Shown here: in pieces, positions 6,395 to 30,089 of the stretch | How positions within the stretch are numbered: position 1 is the stretch's first letter | How the letters are laid out: each line of letters opens with the position of its first letter | Assembly: GCF_902713615.1 (NCBI RefSeq) | Contig: NC_052158.1 | Coordinates: forward strand, 32,281,990 to 32,345,989 | Origin: Scyliorhinus canicula | Lineage: Eukaryota | Length of the DNA stretch: 64,000 bases | Reading direction: 5' to 3' | Made by a program: the position numbers and the translations under genes | Notes under the pieces: generated by a model | Told to the model about the DNA's origin: nothing | Database searches by the model: none | What the model saw: only the letters and a program-made list of their open reading frames with translations

Positions 6395-9300
6395 CTGGGG
6401 AAGAGAAAGAAATATGTAGTTAGAGAAAGAGGAAAACCCAGCAGACACAGAACACCCCCAACAAAACCCATCAGACCCACCAGATGCCCGATACCTAAAG
6501 CGGCAGAAAGCATACGGAATGCTTGCCTCCATTGGATGAGGCATAGAGTATAAAAACTGGCAAGTCATGGCTATAGTTGTATAGAATCATGGTAAGGCTG
6601 CACTTGGAATATTGCGCACAATTCTGGTCGCCACACTAACAGAAAGCTGTGGAGGCTTTGGAGAGGGTGTAGAGGAGGTTTACCAGGATGTTGCCTGGTC
6701 TGGCTATGTGGAGAGGCTGAATAGACTTGGACTGTTTGCATTAGAAAGATGGAGTTTGAGATTTGATCTGATAGAGGTCTACAAGATTATGAGGGGCATG
6801 GGTAGCGTCGATTGGGCAAGCATTCTTTCCCAGGGTGGAGGGGTCAGTCACCAGGACGCATAGGTTTAAGGTCCATGGAGCAACATTTAGAGGAGATGAG
6901 CGAGGCAGTTTTTTTTACGCAGAGGGTGGCGAGTGCCTGGAGCACGTTGCCAGCGGATGCTGTGGAAGCAGATACATTAACAGCATTCAAAAGGCATCTC
7001 GACAAAAGCATGGATAGGATGGGATACGGTACAAGGAGGTGCTGAGGGATTTGGTAAAGGTTGGTATCGTGACCGGTATAGGCTTGGAGGGCCGAAGGGC
7101 CTGTTCCTGTGCTGTATTGTTCTTTGAAGAGAACAGAAAGTGGAGGGGGTGGAGTTTAAAGAGAAATTTGTAAATCAACCCGAGCATAAAAAGATACAGG
7201 GGGCGATTCTCCGATATGGAGGCCAACTGTTCACGTCGTTGTAAAACGTGACGCCGGCGTGAACGGGACCCGCAAAATCGGCGCTGCGCCAACCCGGGCA
7301 TGGGCAGTTGGGCCAGCTCAATCCTGCACATGCACAGTTGGGCCGCGCCATCATGCGCATGCGCGGGGAACTTGTTACGGCTCCGACCCAACATGGGGTC
7401 GGTGTTCAGGGACTGGCCGCGGTGCCGGGAAGTAGGCCCGGGAGGATGGGGGGGGGGGGGGGGGGAGGGGGGGAGGGGAGAGGCCGGCCCGCCGATCGGT
7501 GGGCCCCGATCGCGGACCGGACCCCATCGGAGGCCCCTCCCGGTCAGGAGCCCCCCCCCCCCACAGGCCACCCCCCGAGCGTTCCCACAGAGTTCCCACT
7601 GGCAGCGACCAGGGTGGAACAGCGCCGGTAGGACCCTCTCGTGTCGGAGTGGCCGCTCGGCCCATCCAGGCCGGAGAATCGGTGGCCGATTCCAGCAGCC
7701 TGCGGCTGGTGCCGCATCAGCGCAAATGGCGTCGATTCTCCGCACCTCGGTCAATTGCACAGGGGCGTCGAGCCATCATGGCGCAGTTGCTCCTATTCTC
7801 CAGCCTGGCGCGGGGCTCGGAGAATCGCCCCCATAATATTTGAAAGAGAACAAAATCAAGGAGCATAAAGAGGTAACAGAGGGCCAATTGGAGACTTAAA
7901 AGTTAACCTGTGTGAGGATGCACAGGTTGTGGTCAGGTTCTCAATGATTTCTTGGCAACTGAGTACAAAGAACAGGGAGCTGATGATGACACACTGATGT
8001 CATACAGGAAGATGATCACAGAGGTTTTAATCCTATCAATGGGTTTGATGGCCAAAATCTTCCGTTCTCAATCGCAGCTGAGATTTTCCGGTGCCACTCA
8101 AAGTGAATTGATCTTTTGCCGGAAAACCAGATTTTCCGGTATCGCTCGCAATGGGTCCGGCCAGGGACGAGATCGGCAATCCCGTCCGATGTCGTTCAAA
8201 GTAGAAGTTAGAAGAAGCAAGGGAGGAACTTGCAGAGGCTTTGACCATCATTACAATCCCTCCCTGGCAACAGGAGTGGTGGAAGAAGATTGAGGGACTG
8301 AGGAATGATTGACCAGCTAATATAACATCAGTGATGGGAAAATTATTGGAATCCATTTTGAGGAACAGTAGACAACTTTCATTCAGAAAGGCACAGATTA
8401 ATCCAGGAAAGTAGCATGGATTTGTTAAGGGAAGATCATCCCAGACTAAACGTACTGAATTTCTTTGAAGAGGAGAAGGAGGGTTGATGAGGGTAGCGTG
8501 GTGGATGTTGTCAACATAGATTTGAACAACACTTTTGACAAGGTTCCACATGGCACTTACTCTTCGTGGTTTATAGAAATTATTTAGATTCCAATGTTGG
8601 GGTAATGATAAAAGAAGTTTGAAGATGTACAAACCCTGTCCATGTGGCTGACAGTGATGGGAAAAGGTTCAGACTGCAGGAAGATAGAGATGGTCAGATC
8701 AGTTGCGGGGAAAAGCAGAAAATGCAATTCAATGCAGAGAAGTGTGAAGTTTTAGGTTTCGGAAGGTGCAACAAAGCAAAGGGAATCCACAATAAATGGG
8801 AGGATAGTGAGCAACATGGAGGGATAGTGGGCCCTTGGAGTGTATGTCGATAAATTGGGAAAGGTGCCAGGACAGGGAAACAATGTGGTTAAGACACTGT
8901 ATAACATGTTTTCCATTATTATCAGAGGAGCAGAGCACAGTGCTTTTGCTGGAACTGTGAACAACACCAGATAGACCACAGCTGGAGCACTTCAAAAAGT
9001 CTGTCAGCACATTACAGAAAAGATGGTACTGGCGAGAATGCAGAGGAGATTGTTTAATGTGGACAGGACTGGAGAATGTTCATTGGGTGAAAAGACCGGA
9101 TAGGCTAGAATAGGAATCTTTAGAATGGAGGAGGCAAGAAGGGAATTTTAATTGAGATGTATATATTCTGAGAAGCCATGGTAAACAAGGATAATCTATA
9201 CCTTAGTAAAAGGATCCAAAATCAAGAGGGCACACATTTAAAGTAACTGACGGAAGCAATAGAGGAGAGATTAGGAAACAGTATTTCATTCAGTAGGTGG

Positions 9301-12300
9301 TAGGGATCTGGAACTCTCTGCCTGAAGGATGGGAGAGGCAGAAACTCCCACCACATTTAGCAAATTCTTGGATGTTGACTTGAGGAGCTGTGATCTGCAG
9401 GGCTGCAAACTGAGGACATGAAGTTGAGATTGGGCTGGGGAATCTCTTCATTAATCTGCAGGGACATGATGGGCTGAATGGCCTCTTTCTGTGTTGTAAA
9501 TTTCTAACATTCAATTTCCAATCCTCAAATCAGCTATCAAACCCCAGCAGACCTTCAAACACCAGCAAACCCCATCAGACCAGCAAAATTCACGAAAACA
9601 CCTGACACCACAAACATTCAGAAAAGATCAGACCCATGACAAAACATGACACATGTTAAATCCTGGGGGAGTGATACACCCCAGTGAGCAACACTGAGGG
9701 AAAACTCTGGGAATTCCAATTTCCTTAAGAAAATTCAGCAGCATAGAGGAGTCTGTCCAGGGTGAAATGTTTCTGGATGTCTCAACACCCACAATATCTC
9801 CATCCTCAGACCATAGAGGACCAACCATTTCCAGAAGACCAGTCTCAATGCTCAGTGCTGAATTGGATGAGTTTCACTTTAGTGACGATACATGGAGAGA
9901 CAGACATGGAGCTCGCACTCCACCCACCAGATTATGCAGTTAACACCAGCAGGAATATCCCCGTTAGAATGATCCACTCCCAATTTTGATCATCAATGTT
10001 CATACCTCAAACATCAACTTATACCGATAAGTTCGGAGGAGCTGGATGAAGAACCCCCTTTATCAGAAGCTGTTAAAGGAAGGAGAGGCATTAAAAAAAT
10101 TATTAGAGAGTATCAGGCACAGAATGCAGAATGTTTCACACAGTTACACACAGATCCAGAGGGTGTTTGCTGATCAGCTTACTGTTTGTAGGATTGTAGT
10201 CGCTCTTCCCTCTCCCTGTAAAACAAGGAATGTTTAGTGAGTGACAAAACTGACAGAAAATCAGGGAGAGTCTGAAACTCCGAGTGAAAAGGACAGATGG
10301 ACCGTTCCTCAGTCCCCCGCCCGTACACGGTACCCACGCTCCCGCCCGGACACGGGATTCATACTGATCCCTAAACTCATTGTCCAACCCGGGACCCTTT
10401 CCCACATTTCTGACTCTCTCTGTTTATCATGAGTCCCTTACTCTCCCTGTCTCAACCCTGGGGCTCTTTCGCCCACTGTATGCTCCCTGCACCAACCTGA
10501 GAACCACAGACAGCCATCCTCACACTGGAATATTCCCTCAGGATCCCAGTGTGGAGCTGCTGTTTTCCCTCCAATTCCTACCTTTCTTCTTGTAGATGAC
10601 GACAGCCACAATGATGAGAGCGATGAGCAGCCCCAGGATCCCGAGCACAATCCCAATGGTAACCTGGGAGTGAGACTTTGGCACTGTTAGAGAGAAAATC
10701 AGAGACAGTGAATCAGGGAGAGAGAAAATGTTAGCATCTGAATTTCAAAGGCCTCAATTTGACCAACCCCAGCCTCTGTTTTCCTGAGAACAGAGACCCA
10801 GCCTGTCAACCCTTCCCTGATACGTACACCCACTCATTTCTGGTACCATCTCTGGAATTCATCTCTACAACCTCTCCTTGGCAGCACGGTAGCACAGTGG
10901 TTAGCATTGTTGCTTCACAGCTCCAGGGCCTCAGGTTCAAGATCCTGGATCACTGTCTGTGCGGAGTCTGCACATTCGTCCCATGTCCGTCCGGGTGCTC
11001 CGGTTTCCTCCCACAAGTCCCCAAAGACGTGCTGATAGGTAATTTGGACATTCTGAATTCTCCCTCAGTGTACCCGAACAGGCGCCGGAATTTGGCGACT
11101 AGGGGCTTTCCACAGTAACTTCATTAAAATGTTAATTTAAGCGTACCTGTGATAATAAAGATTATTATTATTGTACAAGATGGTGACTGGAACTGCACAC
11201 GGTATTCTAAATGTGGTCTAACCAAGGTTTGATACAGGTTTAGCATAATATTCCGAATTTAAAATTCTACCCCTCGAGAAATAAAGCCTGGTTTTCGGTT
11301 TGCTTTATTGTGACCTTGTGCAAACAGTTACGTCAAGTTTATTGATTGCTTGTACACGGAGATCCCTTTGTTCCTGACCCCATCTAGACTTGCGCCTTTC
11401 AAGTACGATGTGACCTCCCTATTCATCCTCAATGAAAACTACCTTACGTTTATCTGTGCTGAACTTCATTGACCAATTATTTGCCCATCCTATAAGTTTA
11501 TAATGTCTATTCATTTGTTGCAATCCTGCTCAGTATCGACTAATCCCACCCAATCCGGTGTCATCTGCAAATTGAGAAATAGTGTTTTGGATTCCCTGTC
11601 CACATCATTGAGTGTAAGTTGTGAACAGCGGTGATCCCAGCACTGATCCTTGTGGATCACCACTTTCCACCTTCTGCACTCTGAATAATGCTCCATCACT
11701 CTCGCGCTCTGCTTTCGATCTTCAAGATGTGGAGATGCCGACGTTGGACTGGGGCGAGTACAGTAAGAAGTCTCACAACACCAAGTTAAAGTCCGACACG
11801 TTTGTTTCGGAGAGCAGCTCCTTCATCAGCAGAGTGAATAGGTGGGTTCCACAAACACAAATATAGACAAATTCAATGATGCAAGACGACGACTGACATC
11901 CAAACAAAAATGTAATGTTTGAAGGATATGTCTTTCGTATGCAGTCACAAAAATCGGGCACAGATTTTGTAACAGACTTGCGTCTTAAAGCACAATCCTA
12001 CAATTTTGCAGAACTGCAGGATTCTATAATAAAGGACCATTTGTTTATTGACTAAAAAGTGCCACGTTACGCAAACGAATGTGATGTGACTTTATGAAAT
12101 ACGGATATGCAAGGCCAGCGAAGTTGATTTGCAACAACCCACTGGAATTCAAGCACAGGGAAATGGCGTGAAACAAGAAAGCGAGACCGACGCCATCCTT
12201 GCAGTGTTGCAGCAAAACTAAAACGTGGTCAGCATGTTGACCGCCATGTTAGAGGACCATCAGAGCATGCCACTGTGTCCCAGGTGTGACAGAATGCACA

Positions 12301-21300: not shown

Positions 21301-24300
21301 TATATCACCACACATACGGAAATATCCCAAGATACACAGGCCATCTTGTACTGTAATACCCCAGGATAAACCAGGCTCTGTCCTCCCGTTATATCCCAGG
21401 ACACTGGGCCCTGACCCTTCTGGCATATCACAGGAAACACTGGCCTTGTCCCTCCTGTAATATCCCAGCATACACCGGGCCCTGACCATCTGGAGTAAAA
21501 TATTGTCGTATTGAAATATCCCAGGATACACTGGGCCATGTTATACTGTATTTTCTCAAGTTACACTGGGTCACTGTCTGTGTGGAGTCTGTACATCCTC
21601 CCCGTGCCTGCGTGGGTTTCCTCCGTATGCTCAGGTTTCCTCCCATAAATCCCGAAAGACGTGCTGTTATGTAATTTGGACATTCTGAATTCTCCCGCCG
21701 TGTACCCGAACAGGCACCAGAATGTGGTGATGAGGGGCTTTTCACAGTAACTGCATTGCAGTGTTAATGTACTTATGACAATAAAGATTATTATTGTTAC
21801 TGTAATATCATAGGATACACTGGGCCCTGTCGTACCCAAAATACACCAGGACATGTCGCACTGCAATATCCCAGGATATTCTGAGCCCTGTCATACTGTA
21901 ATATCCCAGGATAGTGTGGGCCCTGTCATACTGTAATATCCCAGGATACTCTGAGCCCTGTCATACTGTAATATCCAAGGATAGTGTGGGCCCTGTCATA
22001 CTGTAATATTCCAGGATAGTGTGGGCCCTGTCATACTGTAATATCCCAGGATAGTGTGGGCCCTGTCATACTGTAATATCCCAGGATACACTGGGCTCTG
22101 TCATACTGTAATATCCCAGGATAGTGTGGGCCCTGTCATACTGTAATATCCCAGGATACACTGGGCTCTGTCATATTCTAACATCTCAGGATACACTGAG
22201 CTGTCTTACTGTAATGTCCCAGTATATATTGGACCCTGTTGCACTGTAATATCCCAGTAAGCACTGGGTGGTGTTGTATTGTAATAGCCCAGGATACACC
22301 GGGCATGTTCTACTGTAATATCCCAGGATACACCAGGCCCTGGTTCTCCTATAATATCCCAAGGTGCTCTGGACCCTGTCACACGCATATCTCAGGGTAC
22401 ACCGGCATGAGCTGGGATACACCAAACCTTGCCCTTCTAATAATAATAATCATCACTTATTATCACAAGTAGGCTTCAATGAAGTTACTGTGAAAAGCCC
22501 CTAGTCGCCACATTTCAGCCCCCCTCTCGCAATATCCCAGGATACATCCCAGGAAACTACAAAAGGTCATGAATGTAGCACAATCCATCACAGAAACCAG
22601 CCTCCCATCCATTGACTGTCTACAATTCCCGCTGCCTCGGAAAGGCAACCAGCATAATTAAGGACCCCATGCACCCCGAGCATACGCTCTTCCACTTCAT
22701 CTGTCAGGAAAAATATACAAAAGTTTGAGGTCACGCACCAACTGACTGAAGAACAGCTTCTTCCCTACTGTCATCAGGCTTTTGAATGGACCTACTTCGC
22801 ATTAAGTTGATCTTTTCTCTGCACCCAAGCTATGACTGTAACTCTGCTGTCCCTCCTTCTTTCCCTATGTACAGTATGTGTTATCTGTACAGCATACAAT
22901 AAACTATACTTTTCACTATATACTAATACATGTGACAATAATAAATCAAATCAAATAAGGAAACACCAGGCATTGTCCATCCAGCAAAATCCCAGATACA
23001 CCAGACACGGTCCATCCTGCAACATACCAGGTTACATCAGACCCTGTCGTACTGTAATATCACTGGACATACCAGGCCTGTCCCTCTGTAGTATCCCAGG
23101 ATACTCTAGGCCCTGTCCCTCCTATAATACCCCAGGGTACTCCAGATACTGTCACACTAATATCACAAGGTACACTGTCCCTAGAGGATACACCAGGCAC
23201 CGCCATTTCAGCAATATCCCAGACACACCAGCTACTATACCTCCTACCATACTCCAGCACACACCAGGCACTATTCCTCCTTCAATATTCTAGATTACAT
23301 CAGGCCCTGTCACACAGCAATATCCCAGGATATACCGGGACAATTTGTGCAGTAATTTGCCAGGATACACTGGATCCTGTCATACTGTAACATTCCAGGA
23401 TTCAATGGGCCCTGTACATCTTATAATATCCCAGGATTCCATGGGCACTGTCATGCTGTAATATCCAAAAATACCCAGGCCCTGATCTGCTATAATGCAC
23501 AAAGATACACCAGATACTGTCCTACTCTAATATCTCATGATACATTGGATCCTCTCCACCTGTAATATCCCAGGACACACTGGGCCCTGTTATACCGTAA
23601 TGCCCCAGGATAAACCAGGCTCAGTCCTACCGTAATATCCCATGAAACTGAATCCTGTTGCACTGCAATACTCCAGTATTGCCCTGTCCCTGCTTTTATA
23701 TCCCAGAATACACTGGGCCCTTTCATACTATAATATGACAGGATACAACAGGCTCTATCATTCTTCCAATGTCCCAGGATACACCGGGCCCTGTCCCAGC
23801 TGTTATATCACTCAGCTAAATCGCTGGCTTTTAAAGCAGACCAAGCAGGCCAGCAGCACGGTTCGATTCCCGTAACAGCCTCCCCGGACAGGCGCCGGAA
23901 TGTGGTGACTAGGGGCTTTTCACAGTAACTTAATTGAAGCCTACTCGTGACAATAAGCGATTTTCATTTTCATTTCATTTTTAATACACTGGCCCCTGTC
24001 ATACGATAATATGACAGGATATAACAGGCTCTATCATTCTTCCAATGTCCCAGGATACACCGGGTCCTGTCCCTGCTGTAATACCCCAGCCTACACCAGG
24101 CCCTGACCACCTGGGTGTCATGTCAGAAACATGGAGGAAAAGATTGTATTTATTATGGTTATGCCCTGAACACTCCTTTTTTCCTTATCCCCTGTTTATT
24201 GTGAGATTGAAAAAAGGTAGATGTTGTGAAATCCCTCGTGGTTCTATTTTCACCTTGCCCAGAATTTGCGCTGCAGTTATTCATAGAGGATTGGAACACA

Positions 24301-27300
24301 CCAAATTTATGGGCTGGGGAAAAATGACACCATTTATAAAGAGGAATCTCAGAATATTTTAAAAATTAATGTTCTGTTTGGAAATGAGGAGTGAGCAGGG
24401 AAATCAGGGCCGTTTTCATTGACCACCCTCACCGTCCACAACATGGGGTAAACCAGGCCCTGTCCTAATGTAATACCCGAGGATACACTGCCCTGTCATA
24501 CTGTAATATCCCAGCGTACCCCGACCTATTATACTATCCAATGATACACCAGAAACTGTCCTACCCTAAATTCCCATGACTCATTGGATCCTGTCAACCT
24601 GTAATATCCCAAGATTCACTGGGCCATGTTGTACTGTAATACCCCAGGGCTGCATAGCGCCACAGTGGGTAGCACTGGTGCCTCACAGTGCCAAAGACCC
24701 GGGTTCAATTCTGTACTTGGGTGACTCTATGGGGAGCTTGTACATTAGTCCCACGTCTGTGCGGTTTCCTCCAGGTGCTCTGGTTTCCTCCCACAATCCA
24801 GATGTGCAGTCAGTGGATTGACCAGGCAAAATTCCCCATTAGTGTCCAAAGGTTAAGTGGGGTTATGGAGAAAGGGAAGGGAGTGGGCCTAGGTAGGGGG
24901 CTCTTGCAGAGAATTACTGCAGACTCGACGGGTGAATGGCCTCCTTCTGCTCTGTGGTGATTCAATGCTTCTTCTCCGATACACTGGGCCATGTTGTGCT
25001 GTAATATCTCAAGATAAACCAGGCTCTTTCCTCCCATAATATCCCAAGGTACACCGTGCCTTGTCGGATTGCAATGTTTCAGGATACACTGGCCCAGAGG
25101 GCCCCTCGCCCTGTAATAACCCAGAATATCCCAGGCCCTGACCAAATATAATGTCCAATGATATATCAGATACTGTACCACCATAATATCTTATTCTACA
25201 CTGGATCCTGTAAACCTGTAATTTCCCAGGATACAGGACAACATGGCCCAGTGTAATACCCCAGGATGAACCAGGTGCAGTCCTACTGTAATATCCTGGA
25301 GTACTCTGGATCCTGTCATACTGAAATATCCTATGAAACAATGGATACACTGCAAAATCCCAGGATAACTGAGCCCAGATGTACTGTGACATCCCAGTAT
25401 ACACTAGGCCCTGTTATACTGTAATATCGCAGGATACACAGAGCCCTGACATACTGCAATATCCCAGGACACACTGGGCCATTATACTGTTATATCCCAG
25501 GATTGAGCCCTGTCAGACTGCAATATTCCAGTATACACTGGGCCCTGTTATACTGTAATATCCTAGGATACCCCAGGCCCTACCTTCCAAAAACATTACA
25601 AAGTTGCTCTGGATCCTGTCACACAAATATCTCAGCGTACACTGGCCCTCGCTAGGATGCACCAGGCCCTGCCCCTCCAGCAATATCCCAGAAAACAGCA
25701 AGCACTGTCCATCTTGCAATATCCCAAATTCCATCAGGCACTATCCCTGCTGTAATATCCCTGGATACGTCAGTCCTATCCGACTGTACTATCCCAGGAT
25801 ACATTTATAATATCCTAGGATACTCCAGGCCTGTCCCTTTGTTCTGCCCCAGGATACTCCAGGCCCTATCTCTCTTTGCAATATCCCAGGGTACATCTGG
25901 CCTGTCCTGTTATACAGCTCCATGCCTTGCCCCTCCAACAATATTCCAGATACACCAGAAAGTGTCCATCCTGCAACACTGCAGGATACAGGAAGCACTA
26001 ACCCTCCTGTTATATCCCAGTATACGCCAGGCTCTGCTGTAATGCAACATCCAGGAATATATCTGGACCTTTCATACAGTAATTTTCCAGTAACATTCCA
26101 GTGTGACAGGATCCAGTGAATCCTGACAAATTACTGTATGAAAGGTCCAGATATATTCTTGCATGTTTCATATACATTCCAGGGGACAACAGGCCCTGTT
26201 TTACTGTAATATCCCAGGTGGGGCATGTTGCACAATAAATCCCAGGACACACAATCACTGTCCTCCAATAGTGGCTCCATGGTATGTTAGAGTTGAACAT
26301 TTATTTGCTCTGTGTCCTGGGCTCCAGCCTGAACTGGTGAACAGCTCAGCACTGACCCTCCCTCCAGGTGATCCTAATCTGAGGCTGTGTCCCTCTAACA
26401 GTGAGAAATGGTCTTACTATAAATCACCACCAGTGTCTCATTCAGTCCGCTGTGTTCCACCCGACAGGAATACTCAGCCTGGTCCTCCGGATCAAACTCC
26501 ACCCATTTCCGGATCTGGTAGGTCCTGTCGTGATTGGGTAAGATCCCACTGGACAGGGTCTCATCAATCACCACTCCATCTCTGCACAGATTCACCTCGA
26601 TGGCTTGAGGGTAAAACCCGGTGACGACACAGGGCAGCCGGTTAGAATCACCCAGACGGGTAAAGGACACGATGGGGGCAACTGAGAGAGAAAGAAAAAG
26701 GAATCAGTACAGGAAACTCGAGATAGAGAATCCTAGACATCACCCACTTTACCGACTCACAGATCCCCCCCCTCACTCACCGACTCTCAGTCCCTCCCTC
26801 ACTCAGCGACCCTCACTCCCCTCCCCTCACTCGCCGACTGTCAGCCCCCCTCACTCACCGACTGTCAGTCCCCCCCCTCACTCACCGACTCTCAGTCCCC
26901 CCCCTCACTCACCGACTGTCAGTCCCCCCCCTCACTCACCGACTGTCAGTCCCCCCCCTCACTCACCGACTCTCAGTCCCCCCCCCCCTCACTCACCGAC
27001 TCTCAATCCCCCCCCTCACTCACCGACTCTCAGTCACCCCCCTCACTCACCGGCTCTCAGTCCCCTCCTCGCTCACAGACTGTCAGTCCCTCCCTCGCTC
27101 ACCGACTCTCAGTCCACTCCCTCGCTCACCGACTCTCAGTCCCCTCCCTCGCTCACCGACTCTCAGTCCCCCCCTCACTCACCGACTCTCAGTCCCCCCC
27201 CTCACTCACCGACTCTCAGTCCCCCCCCTCACTCACCGACTCTCAGTCCCCCCCCCTCACTCACCGACTCTCAGTCCCCCCCTCACTCACCGACTCTCAG

Positions 27301-29983
27301 TCCCCCCCTCACTCACCAACTCAGTCCCTCCCTCACTCACCGACTCTCAGTCCCTCCCTCACTCACCGCCTCTCAGTCCCCCCCTCACTCACTGACTCTC
27401 AGTCCCCCCCTCACTCACCGATTCTCAGTCCCTCCCTCACTCACCGACTCTCAGTCCCCCCTCACTTACCGACTATCATTCACCCCCTCACTCACCGACT
27501 CTCAGTCCCCCCCTCACTCATCGACTCACAGTCCCCCCCCCACTCACCGACTCTCAGTCCCCCCCCACTCACCGACTCTCAGTCCCCCATCACTCAGCGA
27601 CTCTCAATCCCCCATCACTCAGCGACTCTCAATCCCCACTCACTCACCGACTCTCAGTCCCCCTGTCACTCACCGACTCTCAATCCCCCCTCACTCAACA
27701 AATCTCAGTCCCCCCGTCACTCACCGACTCTTAGTCCCCATCACTCACCGACTGTCAGTTCCCTCTGTCCATACTCCAGGTATTTCCTCAGCCACTCGAT
27801 ACACTCCACCTCCAGGTAATGTTTCCAGCGCTGGTTATTGACGTTGTTCTTGTCCCACCTGTTTTTGAAGCTCTCTCCCCAGGGGACCGGGGTCACCCAC
27901 ACCATGTTACTCTTGTCGAAGCTGATGAAATCTCGTCCATCCCAGCCGTATTGGGCGAATGCACTTGTGCTCCCATCATCCCTCAGGTCACAGCCATTCA
28001 TCATCTGGTAAACGTGGATCCCTGATGATCAAAATCACAATCCGCCAATCAGATCCTTTCATTCCAACAGGCCCCATTCAAATACAGACAGCCAATCAGA
28101 GGCTGGCCCTTGGGGTCGCTGCACGTGCCGTGCACACATCCAATCAAAGGAGGCCTCACGAGAAACCTTCCCTCCCCACATTGAGATTTACCTCCACATT
28201 CACAAACACAGCCAATCAGCCACTGGCATCAACATCTCTATCAACTCTGGGCTTCAAGTGATGGGAGCTGGAGGACTCACCTCCTGACTGGTTGGTCCTG
28301 GACATCAGGGTCAAAACATAAGCTTTGAAATAATTCTCCTGCTCCCGTGCGAGAAACTTCTTCCGTTCCCAGAACTCACGCCCCTCACTGAAGACCATCC
28401 ATTGCTCTCTGGGAATCAAGTCCTTCCGATCGCCGTCATACAGAATGAACTGGACATTGTCCACAGAACCGACACCCACAAATTCCCGGAATCCAGGCAT
28501 TGGAGTCATACCCGTGAGGAAATACCGCAGAGAGTGAGAGCCTGAAAAACACACAGAGAGACATCAGGGTCTGAACCCCTAACCAGCAGCACCGACATTT
28601 GCAATGTTCCTCAGAACGTCAGATCGGGAATTGCACAAATGCTGGAGTTCCCAGCCAGGTCTGATCTCTCGCTGCCTCCCTTATCCTCTGTGGCTGCTGG
28701 AATCTCTAACCCAGTCTGTGCTGTGTGGCTGCTGGAATCTCTAACCCAGTCTGTGCTGTGTGGCTGCTGGAGTATCTAACCCAGTCTGTGCTATGTGGCT
28801 GCTGGAATCTCTAACCCAGTCTGTGCTATGTGGCTGCTGGAGTATCTAACCCAGTCTGTGCTATGTGGCTGCTGGAATCTCTAATCCAGTCTGTGCTATG
28901 TGGCTGGAGTCTCTAACCCAGTCTGTGCTATGTGGCTGCTGGGGTCTCTAACCCAGTCTGTGCTATGTGGCTGCTGGAATCTCTAACCCAGTCTGTGCTC
29001 TGCGGCTGCTGCAGTCTCTAACCCAGTCTGTGTTATTTACTCCACTCTCTCTTAGTTTTGGCTGGTGTGTGTATCCAGGAACTTCTTCACCTAAAATAAT
29101 TGTGGTATTCTGAAACTCTCTCCCTCAAATAGATGTAATTGCTGGGGTCAACTGAAACTTTCAAAGTAGAGATGGATTTTTGTTGGGGAAGGAATATGGA
29201 GCACACGGCATGGGGGGGGGGGGGGGGGGAGGAGTTTAGATACAGACCAAGAAGGATCTAATTGCAGGAAAGATGGACAGGATTGTCTCCTCCTGTATTC
29301 TTCCATCTCCTTCCTCTCTGTCTCTTCAGCTCCATGTCCCTGCCCTCAGTTCCCTCACAACTCACAACCTCCCTCTTCTGCAGGCTCAGTACCTGGCCTG
29401 GCTCTGCCCCTTTCACATCCCGTCACTCACTGACCCAGGGTTAATGCCCCAGTACCCAGTCTGGCAGTGCCCCTCTCACACTCCATCACTCACTGACCCA
29501 GGGTTAATGCCCCAGTACCCAGTCTGGCTGTGCCCCTCTCACACTCCATCACTCACTGACCCAGGGTTAATGCCCCAGTACCCAGCCTGGCTCTGTCCCT
29601 CTCACACCCCATCACTCACTGACCCAGGGTTAATGCCCCAGTACCCAGCCTGCTTCTGCCCCTCTCACACCCCATCACTCACTGACCTAGGGTTGATGCC
29701 CCAATACCCAGCGTGGCTCTGCCCCTCTCACACCCCATCACTCACTGACCCAGGGTTAATGCCCCAGTACCCAGCCTAGCTCTGCCCCTCTCACACCCCA
29801 TCACTCACTGACACAGGGTTAATGCCCCAGTACCCAGCCTGGCTCTGCCCCTCTCACACCCCATCACTCACTGACCCAGGGTTAATGCCCCAATACCCAG
29901 CCTGGCTCTGTCCCTCTCACACTCCATCACTCACCTGCAGACACCTCTCCACACAGAAGGAGCAGCGCCATCAGTCCAATCAT
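6381..29983 (-). CDS. MHC-I: MHC class I heavy chain (8 coding exons, 346 aa), probably non-classical, elasmobranch UBA-like lineage
   Basis: Exons of 49+261+273+264+102+33+45+14 = 1041 nt join in frame over GT-AG phase-1 introns: leader MIGLMALLLLCGEVSA, alpha1 GSHSLRYF..RTNQSG, alpha2 with a C..C pair, IgC1 alpha3, TM, cytoplasmic tail. The lineage label is from recall of shark class I sequences, not a search. Confidence 0.95.
6520..7130 (+). mobile_element. CR1 LINE 3' fragment
   Basis: YVERLNRLGLFALER..DLIEVYKIMRG and the tail GGGCCGAAGGGCCTGTTCCTGTGCTGT. Confidence 0.85.
7199..7832. mobile_element. PIF/Harbinger-like MITE
   Basis: TIR GGGGGCGATTCTCCG...CGGAGAATCGCCCCC; flanks ACA/ATA; GC-rich interior. 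Confidence 0.8.
7950..9490 (+). mobile_element. Degenerate CR1 RT fragments
   Basis: KRFRLQEDRD..MQFNAEKCEVLGFG and ..DVVNIDLNNTFDKVPH-like remnants, ending in a CR1-type tail. Confidence 0.65.
10025..10069 (-). CDS. MHC-I exon 7, Ser-rich cytoplasmic (45 bp)
   Basis: TSDKGGSSSSSSELI; ctccttcctttaacag acceptor, g|gtataa donor. Confidence 0.8.
10183..10215 (-). CDS. MHC-I exon 6, cytoplasmic (33 bp)
   Basis: GRGKSDYNPTN with the class I cytoplasmic Tyr; ttttacag acceptor, gtaagc donor. Confidence 0.85.
10582..10683 (-). CDS. MHC-I exon 5, connecting peptide and transmembrane helix
   Basis: (M)PKSHSQVTIGIVLGILGLLIALIIVAVVIYKKK(G); ctctctaacag acceptor, g|gtagga donor. Not shown in frame by the ORF track. 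Confidence 0.9.
10880..11172 (+). mobile_element. V-SINE-type SINE with (ATT)n tail
   Basis: tRNA head GGCAGCACGGTAGCACAGTGGTTAGC and the central conserved domain. Confidence 0.85.
11175..11700 (-). mobile_element. CR1 RT fragment
   Basis: Minus-strand remnants of PQGSVLGP, ..ADDTRLGG.. and MKFNTDK motifs. Confidence 0.65.
11714..11835 (-). mobile_element. Penelope terminal-repeat fragment
   Basis: Shares CACAACACCAAGTTAAAGTCC..TTTGTTTC with the Penelope end at 37222-37330. Confidence 0.6.
13133..13257 (+). mobile_element. Short L1-like 3' end inserted in the Gypsy RT
   Basis: G-run, T-rich UTR, AATAAA, poly(A); degenerate 14-bp TSD AGAATGACGTTTGG/AGAATTCTGTTTGG. Confidence 0.65.
14792..18942 (-). 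mobile_element. 5'-truncated L1-clade LINE (ORF2 EN-RT-CCHC), disrupted
   Basis: RLITWNVRGLN endonuclease, RQGCPLSP and LYADD RT motifs; poly(A) and AATAAA at about 14792-14813; 17-bp TSD GAGGTGCCCGGAATCAT (14775-14791 and 18943-18959). Confidence 0.95.
15005..15137. repeat. 17-bp tandem repeat in the L1 3'UTR
   Basis: (CCCCCCACCTTTTCCCT) x about 7.5. Confidence 0.9.
21068..21312 (-). mobile_element. Solo LTR (245 bp) in the satellite
   Basis: TGTGG...CCACA inverted termini; 5-bp TSD CATAC. Confidence 0.85.
21565..21797 (+). mobile_element. 5'-truncated V-SINE-type SINE
   Basis: Central domain and (ATT)n tail as at 10880. Confidence 0.75.
23811..23980 (+). mobile_element. Short tRNA-derived SINE (same family as 5858-6034)
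   Basis: Near-identical sequence. Confidence 0.8.
24116..24443. mobile_element. Solo LTR (328 bp) in the satellite
   Basis: TGT...ACA termini; 4-bp TSD TGGG. Confidence 0.7.
24647..24968 (+). mobile_element. Older HE1/V-SINE copy
   Basis: tRNA head, diverged central domain and tail. Confidence 0.7.
26300..26305 (-). terminator. Candidate intronic poly(A) signal AATAAA after the alpha3 exon
   Basis: + strand tttatt at 26300-26305, about 90 nt past an in-frame TAG at 26397-26395. Confidence 0.35.
26418..26681 (-). CDS. MHC-I exon 4, alpha3 (IgC1) domain
   Basis: VAPIVSFTRLGDSNRLPCVVTGFYPQAIEV..GILPNHDRTYQI..YSCRVEHSGL; long pyrimidine tract plus cag acceptor, a|gtaaga donor; 88 codons. Confidence 0.96.
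26762..27760. repeat. ~26-bp minisatellite filling MHC-I intron 3 (about 37 units)
   Basis: Unit CTCACTCACCGACTCTCAGTC(5-8); the last unit overlaps the exon 3 donor junction. Confidence 0.95.
27749..28021 (-). CDS. MHC-I exon 3, alpha2 domain
   Basis: GIHVYQMMNGCDLRDDG..QYGWDGRDFISFDK..KNRWD..HYLEVECIEWLRKYLEYG; catcag acceptor, tcg|gtgagt donor; 91 codons. Confidence 0.96.
28045..28219 (-). promoter_or_regulatory. Cluster of four CCAATCA (NF-Y/Y-box-like) motifs in intron 2
   Basis: + strand CCAATCA at 28045, 28092, 28140 and 28212, all in one orientation. Confidence 0.5.
28281..28541 (-). CDS. MHC-I exon 2, alpha1 domain
   Basis: GSHSLRYFLTGMTPMPGFREFVGVGSVDNVQFILYDGD...EGREFWER...LMSRTNQSG with the N-glycan sequon NQS; tttttcag acceptor, gtgagt donor; 87 codons. 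Confidence 0.96.
28684..29030. repeat. 35/36-bp minisatellite in MHC-I intron 1 (about 10 units)
   Basis: Unit TGTGGCTGCTGGAATCTCTAACCCAGTCTGTGCTA. Confidence 0.93.
29380..29934. repeat. 63-bp minisatellite at the 5' end of MHC-I intron 1 (about 9 units)
   Basis: TTAATGC recurs at 29441, 29504 and onward; the array begins at the exon 1 donor. Confidence 0.95.
29935..29983 (-). CDS. MHC-I exon 1, signal peptide MIGLMALLLLCGEVSA
   Basis: ATG at 29983-29981, hydrophobic core, ends CAG|GTGAGT in phase 1 and joins in frame to GSHSLRY. Confidence 0.9.
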
Positions 29984-30089
29984 TGTTGCTTTCGTCCGGT
30001 TAAAGGAAACATTGAAGGGAAATCTTTTCCTGAAGGGACATTTTCAACTCGTTATTTCCGTCTTGTCCGATTCACAGTGACTTAATCGG

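Follow-up and report, generated by a model that had tools for sequence, protein, structure and literature searches.

Splice-donor minisatellite in the third intron of an expressed class I MHC gene of the catshark Scyliorhinus canicula: a probable passenger spliced from its first donor

Which donor is used when an intron consists almost entirely of copies of its own 5′ splice site, and do the surplus copies do anything? The question is raised by a 64,000-nt stretch of the genome of the catshark Scyliorhinus canicula (NC_052158.1, positions 32,281,990 to 32,345,989; hereafter, the window), in which intron 3 of a minus-strand class I gene of the major histocompatibility complex (MHC), the window's sole gene of that class, is occupied by a G-rich tandem array. 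The evidence set out below makes it probable that this array is an exon-boundary (splice-donor) minisatellite, a passenger that is removed whole as intron and of whose donors only the first is used.

Tandem Repeats Finder reported a single array at 26751..27763 with a period of 26, 38.7 copies, 87% matches and a score of 1391. Resolved unit by unit, the minisatellite extends over 26738..27763 on the minus strand and comprises 38 full units of 24–30 nt, typically 26–27 bp, followed by a decayed 39th. It is 55% G on the gene strand and fills ~95% of the 1067-nt intron, the remainder being a 56-nt unique 3′ tail (26682..26737, minus strand) with a candidate branch site TACTGAT, a polypyrimidine tract and an AG acceptor that is backed by an RNA joint. 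Read on the minus strand, unit 1 is ACTGACAGTCG/GTGAGTGATGGGG (the slash marks the splice junction), that is, the final 11 exon 3 bases and, after them, the authentic donor; because unit 1 overlaps exon 3 over 11–15 nt, the first monomer spans the exon–intron boundary. The consensus unit is ACTGAGAGTCG/GTGAGTGAG, then 6–11 G. The original prediction for this locus, made by reading the letters alone, had described the repeat as the last 11 exon 3 bases together with the donor, and unit 1 bears that description out.

The authentic 5′ splice site, TCG/GTGAGT (27743..27751, minus strand; cleavage between 27749 and 27748), recurs as the same 9-mer in 22 of the 37 full pseudo-units, and any 9-mer scorer such as MaxEntScan therefore scores these copies and the real site equally. 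When the comparison is widened to an 11-mer around the donor, 21 sites are identical, the real one included, all with a computed U1 duplex energy of -10.2 kcal/mol. Overall, GT is retained in 31 of the 37 pseudo-units, nine of which keep it with one flanking change, and is lost in the other six (CT three times, TT, AT and GC). These figures agree with the earlier estimate of about 37 units, more than 20 of them keeping TCG/GTGAG, a string that is present in 25 pseudo-units. Across the donor the reading frame runs GTC GGT GAG TGA (V G E stop; the translation TVGE and stop close the open reading frame 27741..28004), placing an in-frame TGA 7 nt into the intron (27741..27743, minus strand), which is reached on pseudo-donor use or intron retention. 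The stop after alpha2 that had been foreseen for any downstream donor is thus confirmed by translation, and the other factual statements of the original prediction hold as well.

Donor choice was read from four runs placed on 26200–30050: contig sets from three different studies (X15, X1 and X2) and one set of raw RNA reads (X20). The contig sets cover exons and no introns, and were therefore treated as transcriptomes. The sole exon 3–exon 4 joint in their contigs is 27749/26681, at depths of 181, 68.5 and 16.5 in X15, X1 and X2, respectively; it skips 1067 nt, has GT..AG ends on the gene strand and is the very pairing of donor and acceptor that had been proposed from sequence. Depth is zero in all eight array bins of the three sets, and in none of these runs does a contig continue from exon 3 past 27749 into the intron. 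At contig sensitivity, and with nonsense-mediated decay (NMD) active, the contig sets hold no joint from any pseudo-site, including joints from 27724 or 27673 to 26681. The 23 raw reads that could be placed come mostly from a paralog, 11 of them from one with its own junction ...CAACTGAGACCCG/TTGCTCC, and the one read on the joint of the gene itself is canonical (27749/26681). Within the sensitivity of contigs, steady-state transcripts use no donor other than the genuine one. A junction survey with and without NMD inhibition had accompanied the original prediction, and the first half of it is addressed here, with every exon 3–exon 4 joint of the three contig sets at the 27749 donor in material in which NMD was active.

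The regulatory role first proposed for the array was that of a splicing rheostat encoded by a variable number of tandem repeats (VNTR): downstream pseudo-donors, followed by the in-frame TGA, would lead either to NMD or to an alpha1–alpha2-only chain, and copy number together with the SR/hnRNP balance would set class I output. We consider this very unlikely, even though the array is rich in potential donors, with GT in 31 and the exact real site in 22 of the 37 pseudo-units, and the NMD logic holds in principle, a TGA at this distance with at least four junctions downstream making the products NMD targets that are hard to see at steady state. Precedent of a kind exists as well, proximal pseudo-sites being used constitutively in the IFI6 and CBS arrays (PMC1557585). 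Against this stand three transcriptome contig sets without a pseudo-site joint, an exon 3 extension or array coverage, and thus without an isoform carrying the premature stop at steady state; a run search that returned no listed sequencing run holding the first seven array units; and GT dinucleotides no better conserved than other positions of the unit. Moreover, identical pseudo-sites do not compete at all in F7, the best-studied analogue (PMC1557585), and, where IFI6 and CBS do use pseudo-sites, it is the first two only, so that 37 copies would hardly widen the range of tuning. Neither the control of class I level nor the alpha1–alpha2-only product thus gains support from transcripts in which the contigs of three runs show the canonical joint only.

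Several points nevertheless weigh against reading the array as a wholly silent passenger. With duplicated strong donors in vitro, whichever lies closest to the 3′ splice site has often won, the outcome being context dependent. Contigs drop rare variants and NMD removes isoforms with premature stops, and pseudo-site use of a few percent may remain hidden. Raw-read support is thin, X20 contributing one read on the gene's joint among the 23 placed. Finally, the leader exon is a different one in X15 and X1 transcripts, and a read-through transcript or near-identical paralog could account for part of their depth; as listed, the X15 contigs of exons 2 and 3 have zero mismatches to the window.

The array, or at least its copy number, might also be an artefact mis-assembled from a short repeat, a reading to which we give almost no credence. 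G-rich tandem repeats are indeed difficult to assemble, but the variants here are ordered, with a diverged 5′ part, GAGC and ACA blocks and unit lengths of 24–30 nt, unlike collapsed or inflated repeats, and RNA joints back both flanks of the array.

For the array as a passenger minisatellite, the following course of events is the one we favour. A segment of 26–27 bp, comprising the last 11 bases of exon 3, the GTGAGT donor and the following G-run, would have been duplicated in tandem, we infer by replication slippage or unequal exchange, and would then have expanded to 38 units within intron 3 of an expressed, membrane-bound non-classical class I gene, where the spliceosome would pick the first donor and discard the whole array. 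Why the first site should prevail can be suggested from known splicing rules. Under exon definition, the authentic donor, the first to follow the acceptor of exon 3, gives the normal 273-nt exon, whereas pseudo-sites would give exons of ~300 to 1240 nt. The authentic site is also transcribed first, and its use fits the 5′-to-3′, most-upstream-wins rule shown in human F7. In addition, every pseudo-site sits downstream of G-runs, which are known to mark intron identity; intronic G-runs help to define exon–intron borders, according to PMC1802585, which cites McCullough and Berget (1997). The GT dinucleotides, in turn, would persist through the youth and homogenisation of the array and not through selection.

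The units themselves retain information on origin and age. The unit consensus, (GA)A CTG AGA GTC G, encodes ELRV, whereas exon 3 of the same gene now reads ELTV (ACA), and GQRELRV/VAP closes alpha2 in nearly every relative listed (S. canicula, S. torazame, Mustelus, Heterodontus, Carcharodon, Cetorhinus, Hemiscyllium and Ginglymostoma). Since the consensus matches the family-wide ELRV and the gene's own exon does not, the direction is from exon to array, with the Arg to Thr change in the exon coming later; the ACA variant of the exon is also present in a few distal units. The comparison supports the view that the array is an amplified copy of the exon 3 end and donor whose units keep the coding sequence in an older state, and the amplification claimed in the original prediction is strengthened by it.

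By coordinates, the array divides into a proximal, older part (units 2–11; 27481..27735, minus strand), with a mean of 1.8 differences per unit from consensus and four units without GT, and a distal, more homogeneous part (units 12–38; 26765..27480, minus strand), with a mean of 0.9 differences per unit, many identical units and G-runs of 7–11. In the statistical comparison, which set units 2–12 against units 13–38, divergence was 1.8 versus 0.9 per unit (Mann–Whitney p = 0.03), as expected of an array whose 5′ edge is old and whose body has expanded or been homogenised recently. The units differ from consensus 43 times within their first 20 positions; six of these departures fall on GT against 4.3 expected if they were uniform, and they show neither a purifying nor a disruptive signal of selection on the GT dinucleotides. 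Loss of GT is commoner proximally (4/11 versus 2/26; p = 0.05), two of the four proximal losses being one duplicated event, and this excess follows from the greater general divergence of the proximal units. Together, these results suggest that the abundance of pseudo-donors is a by-product of a young, homogenised array and not of selection.

The DNA comparison of intron 3 covered one relative, the bamboo shark (Chiloscyllium punctatum) gene L001, which belongs to another class I lineage with alpha2 ending KRELKP. No tandem repeat occurs in its intron 3 (642 nt), and a mismatch scan of that intron for decayed units returned only GA-rich, chance-like matches. The beginning of the intron (7287–7360) reads A/GTGAGTGAGTGAGGGGGAAGGGGTGGGG...TTGAGAGAGAG (in short form, A/GTGAGTGAGTGAGGGGG...TTGAGAGAG), a single-copy GTGAGTGAG with a G-run and a GAGAG motif, and to judge from the letters the donor GTGAGTGA and the G-run that follows it look like the seed of the array.

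A second array of the same kind lies in intron 1 of the catshark gene (29387..29934, minus strand), where Tandem Repeats Finder gave a 63-bp unit in 8.7 copies that starts at the exon 1 donor CAG/GTGAGTGATGG. Intron 1 begins G/GTGAGTGATGGAGTGTGAGAG, and its array holds eight copies of TCA/GTGAGTGA (TCA/GTGAGT); it has the same in-frame G/GT GAG TGA as intron 3, and has the core GTGAGTGATGGGG..GAGAG in common with the intron 3 junction. An X2 contig passes from exon 1, at 29935, directly into exon 2, and the real donor is therefore used in intron 1 also. It is tempting to generalise from two such arrays, but we hold the wider proposition to be improbable: splice-donor minisatellites would be recurrent and lineage-specific in the catshark genome, seeded at a GTGAGTGA donor with its G-run, and class I intron 3 arrays would either be hotspots at which unequal exchange or gene conversion shuffles groove-coding exons against the exons for alpha3 and the transmembrane (TM) segment, or tie output to array length through rare pseudo-donor use and NMD.

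Other tandem arrays occur in the window. A plus-strand array at 40039–41429 (39-bp unit, 36 copies, Tandem Repeats Finder score 2003) lies directly after a tRNA-derived element resembling a short interspersed element (~39880–40030); its unit contains CAGTC(T/G)GTGAGC, which loosely resembles the intron 3 unit, and no adjoining exon is seen. Further arrays with units of 34–36 bp are found in intron 4 (21860–22381 and 25349–25894, both built on ...GGGATATTACAG... units) and in intron 1 (28689–29036). The last of these has an X15 RNA contig depth of 12–20 with multi-place fits, and the family is therefore transcribed somewhere in the genome.

The gene that houses the intron 3 array has the hallmarks of a class I gene, namely the alpha1/alpha2 MHC_I fold, an alpha3 C1-set immunoglobulin (Ig) domain, a TM exon and a phase-1 exon structure. 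Its minus-strand open reading frames match Pfam MHC_I in alpha1 (1.8e-16) and alpha2 (4.1e-24) and C1-set in alpha3 (2e-15). Exon 1 (29935..29983) encodes the leader from an ATG at 29983 and ends in the donor CAG/GTGAGTGA; it is backed by the model translation and by an X2 contig over 29934–30050 that continues into exon 2 letters. Exon 2 (28281..28541) encodes alpha1, with RNA depth confined to the exon and the joint 28020/28280 seen. Exon 3 (27749..28021; 273 nt), which ends ...GAA CTG ACA GTC G, encodes alpha2, and is backed by RNA depth and joints. Exon 4 (26418..26681; donor ATA/GTAAGA), likewise backed by RNA depth, encodes alpha3, its translation being 100% identical to residues 196–282 of the S. 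canicula database protein P0173. Exon 5, for the connecting peptide and TM helix, follows 15.7 kb downstream of exon 4 (10582..10683), the ends of X1 and X2 contigs after 26419 exactly matching 10655–10684. Short cytoplasmic exons beyond it complete a model of 346 aa. The gene is intact, complete and expressed, with TM and cytoplasmic exons.

Among known proteins, every one of the product's nearest relatives is a class I chain from a shark. The closest family, present in multiple copies in Mustelus and Scyliorhinus, has only ~55% identity to the classical UAA chains of Triakis; on these sequence affinities the gene is probably a non-classical, multicopy MHC-Ib gene, and we consider it possibly a member of the UBA lineage described in PMC10751288. 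Within the ~15.7-kb intron 4, X1 and X2 contigs exit exon 4 at the GTAAGA donor (26418/26419) and resume exactly in the TM exon (10683–10582); since they join exon 4 to that exon, the main product is membrane-bound. A stop and an AATAAA lie just past alpha3 (26300–26417), where coverage consists of one X15 contig at depth 2.6 with five mismatches and five gaps. At position 26418, the last base of exon 4 (donor position -1), the window has A (ATG, Met, as in P0173) and X1 and X2 transcripts have G (GTG, Val), a difference between alleles or paralogs.

From alpha3 to the cytoplasmic tail the gene model is 100% identical to P0173, and all 27 residue differences between the two lie upstream of alpha3, from leader to alpha2. 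The database model P0173 spans 131 kb. Transcripts in X15, X1 and X20 join exon 2 (acceptor 28541) to a leader that ends ...GTGGAGGGGCCTCCTCGACAG and is absent from the window, and X2 transcripts use the window's own exon 1. The foreign leader and the P0173 mismatch suggest that transcripts read through or are chimeric between class I paralogs, or that the gene models are mixed.

The switch from mismatch to identity at the alpha2/alpha3 border bears on a further explanation, in which it is the base composition of the array that matters. The 1-kb block of G-runs would serve as a splicing enhancer for the exon 3 donor, or as a tract prone to R-loops or G-quadruplexes that affects elongation, or that favours unequal exchange and gene conversion among class I paralogs at this border. 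The array has 47 G-runs of at least three G, 23 of them of at least six, and G-runs beside 5′ splice sites are known enhancers (PMC1802585); the identity with P0173 from alpha3 on and the 27 differences before it would fit exchange near intron 3, or equally a mis-modelled transcript. Eleven four-tract G-quadruplex motifs appear when loops to 21 nt are permitted, but no canonical motif (loops of at most 7 nt) was found in the array. RNA structure that could hide the pseudo-sites was not found either, the minimum free energy fold being weak and scattered and the centroid nearly unpaired, with a fold z-score of -3 that is expected for a repeat. Furthermore, an enhancer needs no more than a single G-run behind the donor, such as the bamboo shark relative has, which leaves 37 more superfluous. 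An effect of composition is thus unlikely, if somewhat less so than the other alternatives weighed here.

The plus strand of the same region carries a 406-aa open reading frame (26621..27841) rich in PPHSPTLSP, which we rejected as a gene because it is the reverse-strand translation of the minisatellite; such a frame could be miscalled by open reading frame finders as a proline-rich gene. For annotation, arrays of this type should be taken neither as alternative splicing nor as open reading frames. Read as a passenger minisatellite, the locus amounts to a natural experiment on how a 5′ splice site is chosen, in which 22 identical pseudo-donors spaced 26 nt apart go unused in vivo in a cartilaginous fish. 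It offers an example outside mammals of the upstream-donor dominance described for human F7, extending it across ~450 million years of vertebrate divergence, and a regulatory role of the array has no support from the transcript evidence here. If the arrays of class I paralogs are homologous and length-variable, they could serve as markers for haplotyping the shark MHC-Ib cluster and as a place to seek paralog exchange, and the catshark genome may possibly have a general tendency to form donor arrays.

Our literature search found nothing that links sharks, class I introns and minisatellites, and the nearest counterparts are human. Minisatellites whose first monomer lies across an exon–intron boundary are treated as a class in PMC1557585. 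Its best-studied member is the 37-bp VNTR in intron 7 (IVS7) of human F7, in which identical pseudo-sites are functional yet silent and the most upstream site alone is chosen, whatever the monomer number (Borensztajn et al. 2006, PMC1557585). The catshark array shares with it a boundary-spanning first monomer, identical pseudo-sites in which the donor is reiterated unchanged, and normal transcripts that use the most upstream, authentic donor only, as judged at contig-level sensitivity with NMD active. In F7 there are 5–9 monomers of 37 bp, with four exon bases and a weak donor, UGG/gugggu; the catshark array has 38 units of 26–27 bp, each with 11 exon bases and a long G-run, and its GTGAGT donor is stronger. 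Only perfect-consensus sites were able to compete in F7 (PMC1557585), and the catshark site TCG/GTGAGT is a good but not perfect consensus. Pseudo-site function and length polymorphism have been demonstrated for F7.

Other human arrays behave differently or differ in build. According to PMC1557585, the minisatellite in intron 2 of IFI6 (6-16) and the 31-bp VNTR in intron 13 of CBS also use their first two pseudo-sites; they resemble the catshark array in having 15–26 donors reiterated from an exon boundary, and IFI6 is, like the shark gene, immune-related (interferon-induced). Transcripts lengthened by one or two units, as in these two genes, are absent from the catshark contigs, although rare isoforms may escape, and use of a pseudo-site there would meet the in-frame TGA instead of adding codons. 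Nor does the catshark array resemble selected or conserved alternative sites that serve unproductive splicing, given the near-uniform loss of GT (six of 43 departures against 4.3 expected) and a bamboo shark gene L001 without the array. The same source states that LMNB2 (100-bp unit, 10–15 copies) and PDGF intron 4 (81-bp unit, 16–18 copies) use the real donor only, as the catshark gene does; the units reported there are much longer and fewer, whereas the catshark unit barely exceeds the splice signal and its G-run. The catshark array differs from the known cases in degree: its copies are more numerous, its unit is shorter, each unit carries more exon sequence and a long G-run, and the gene that houses it is an immune gene from a cartilaginous fish.

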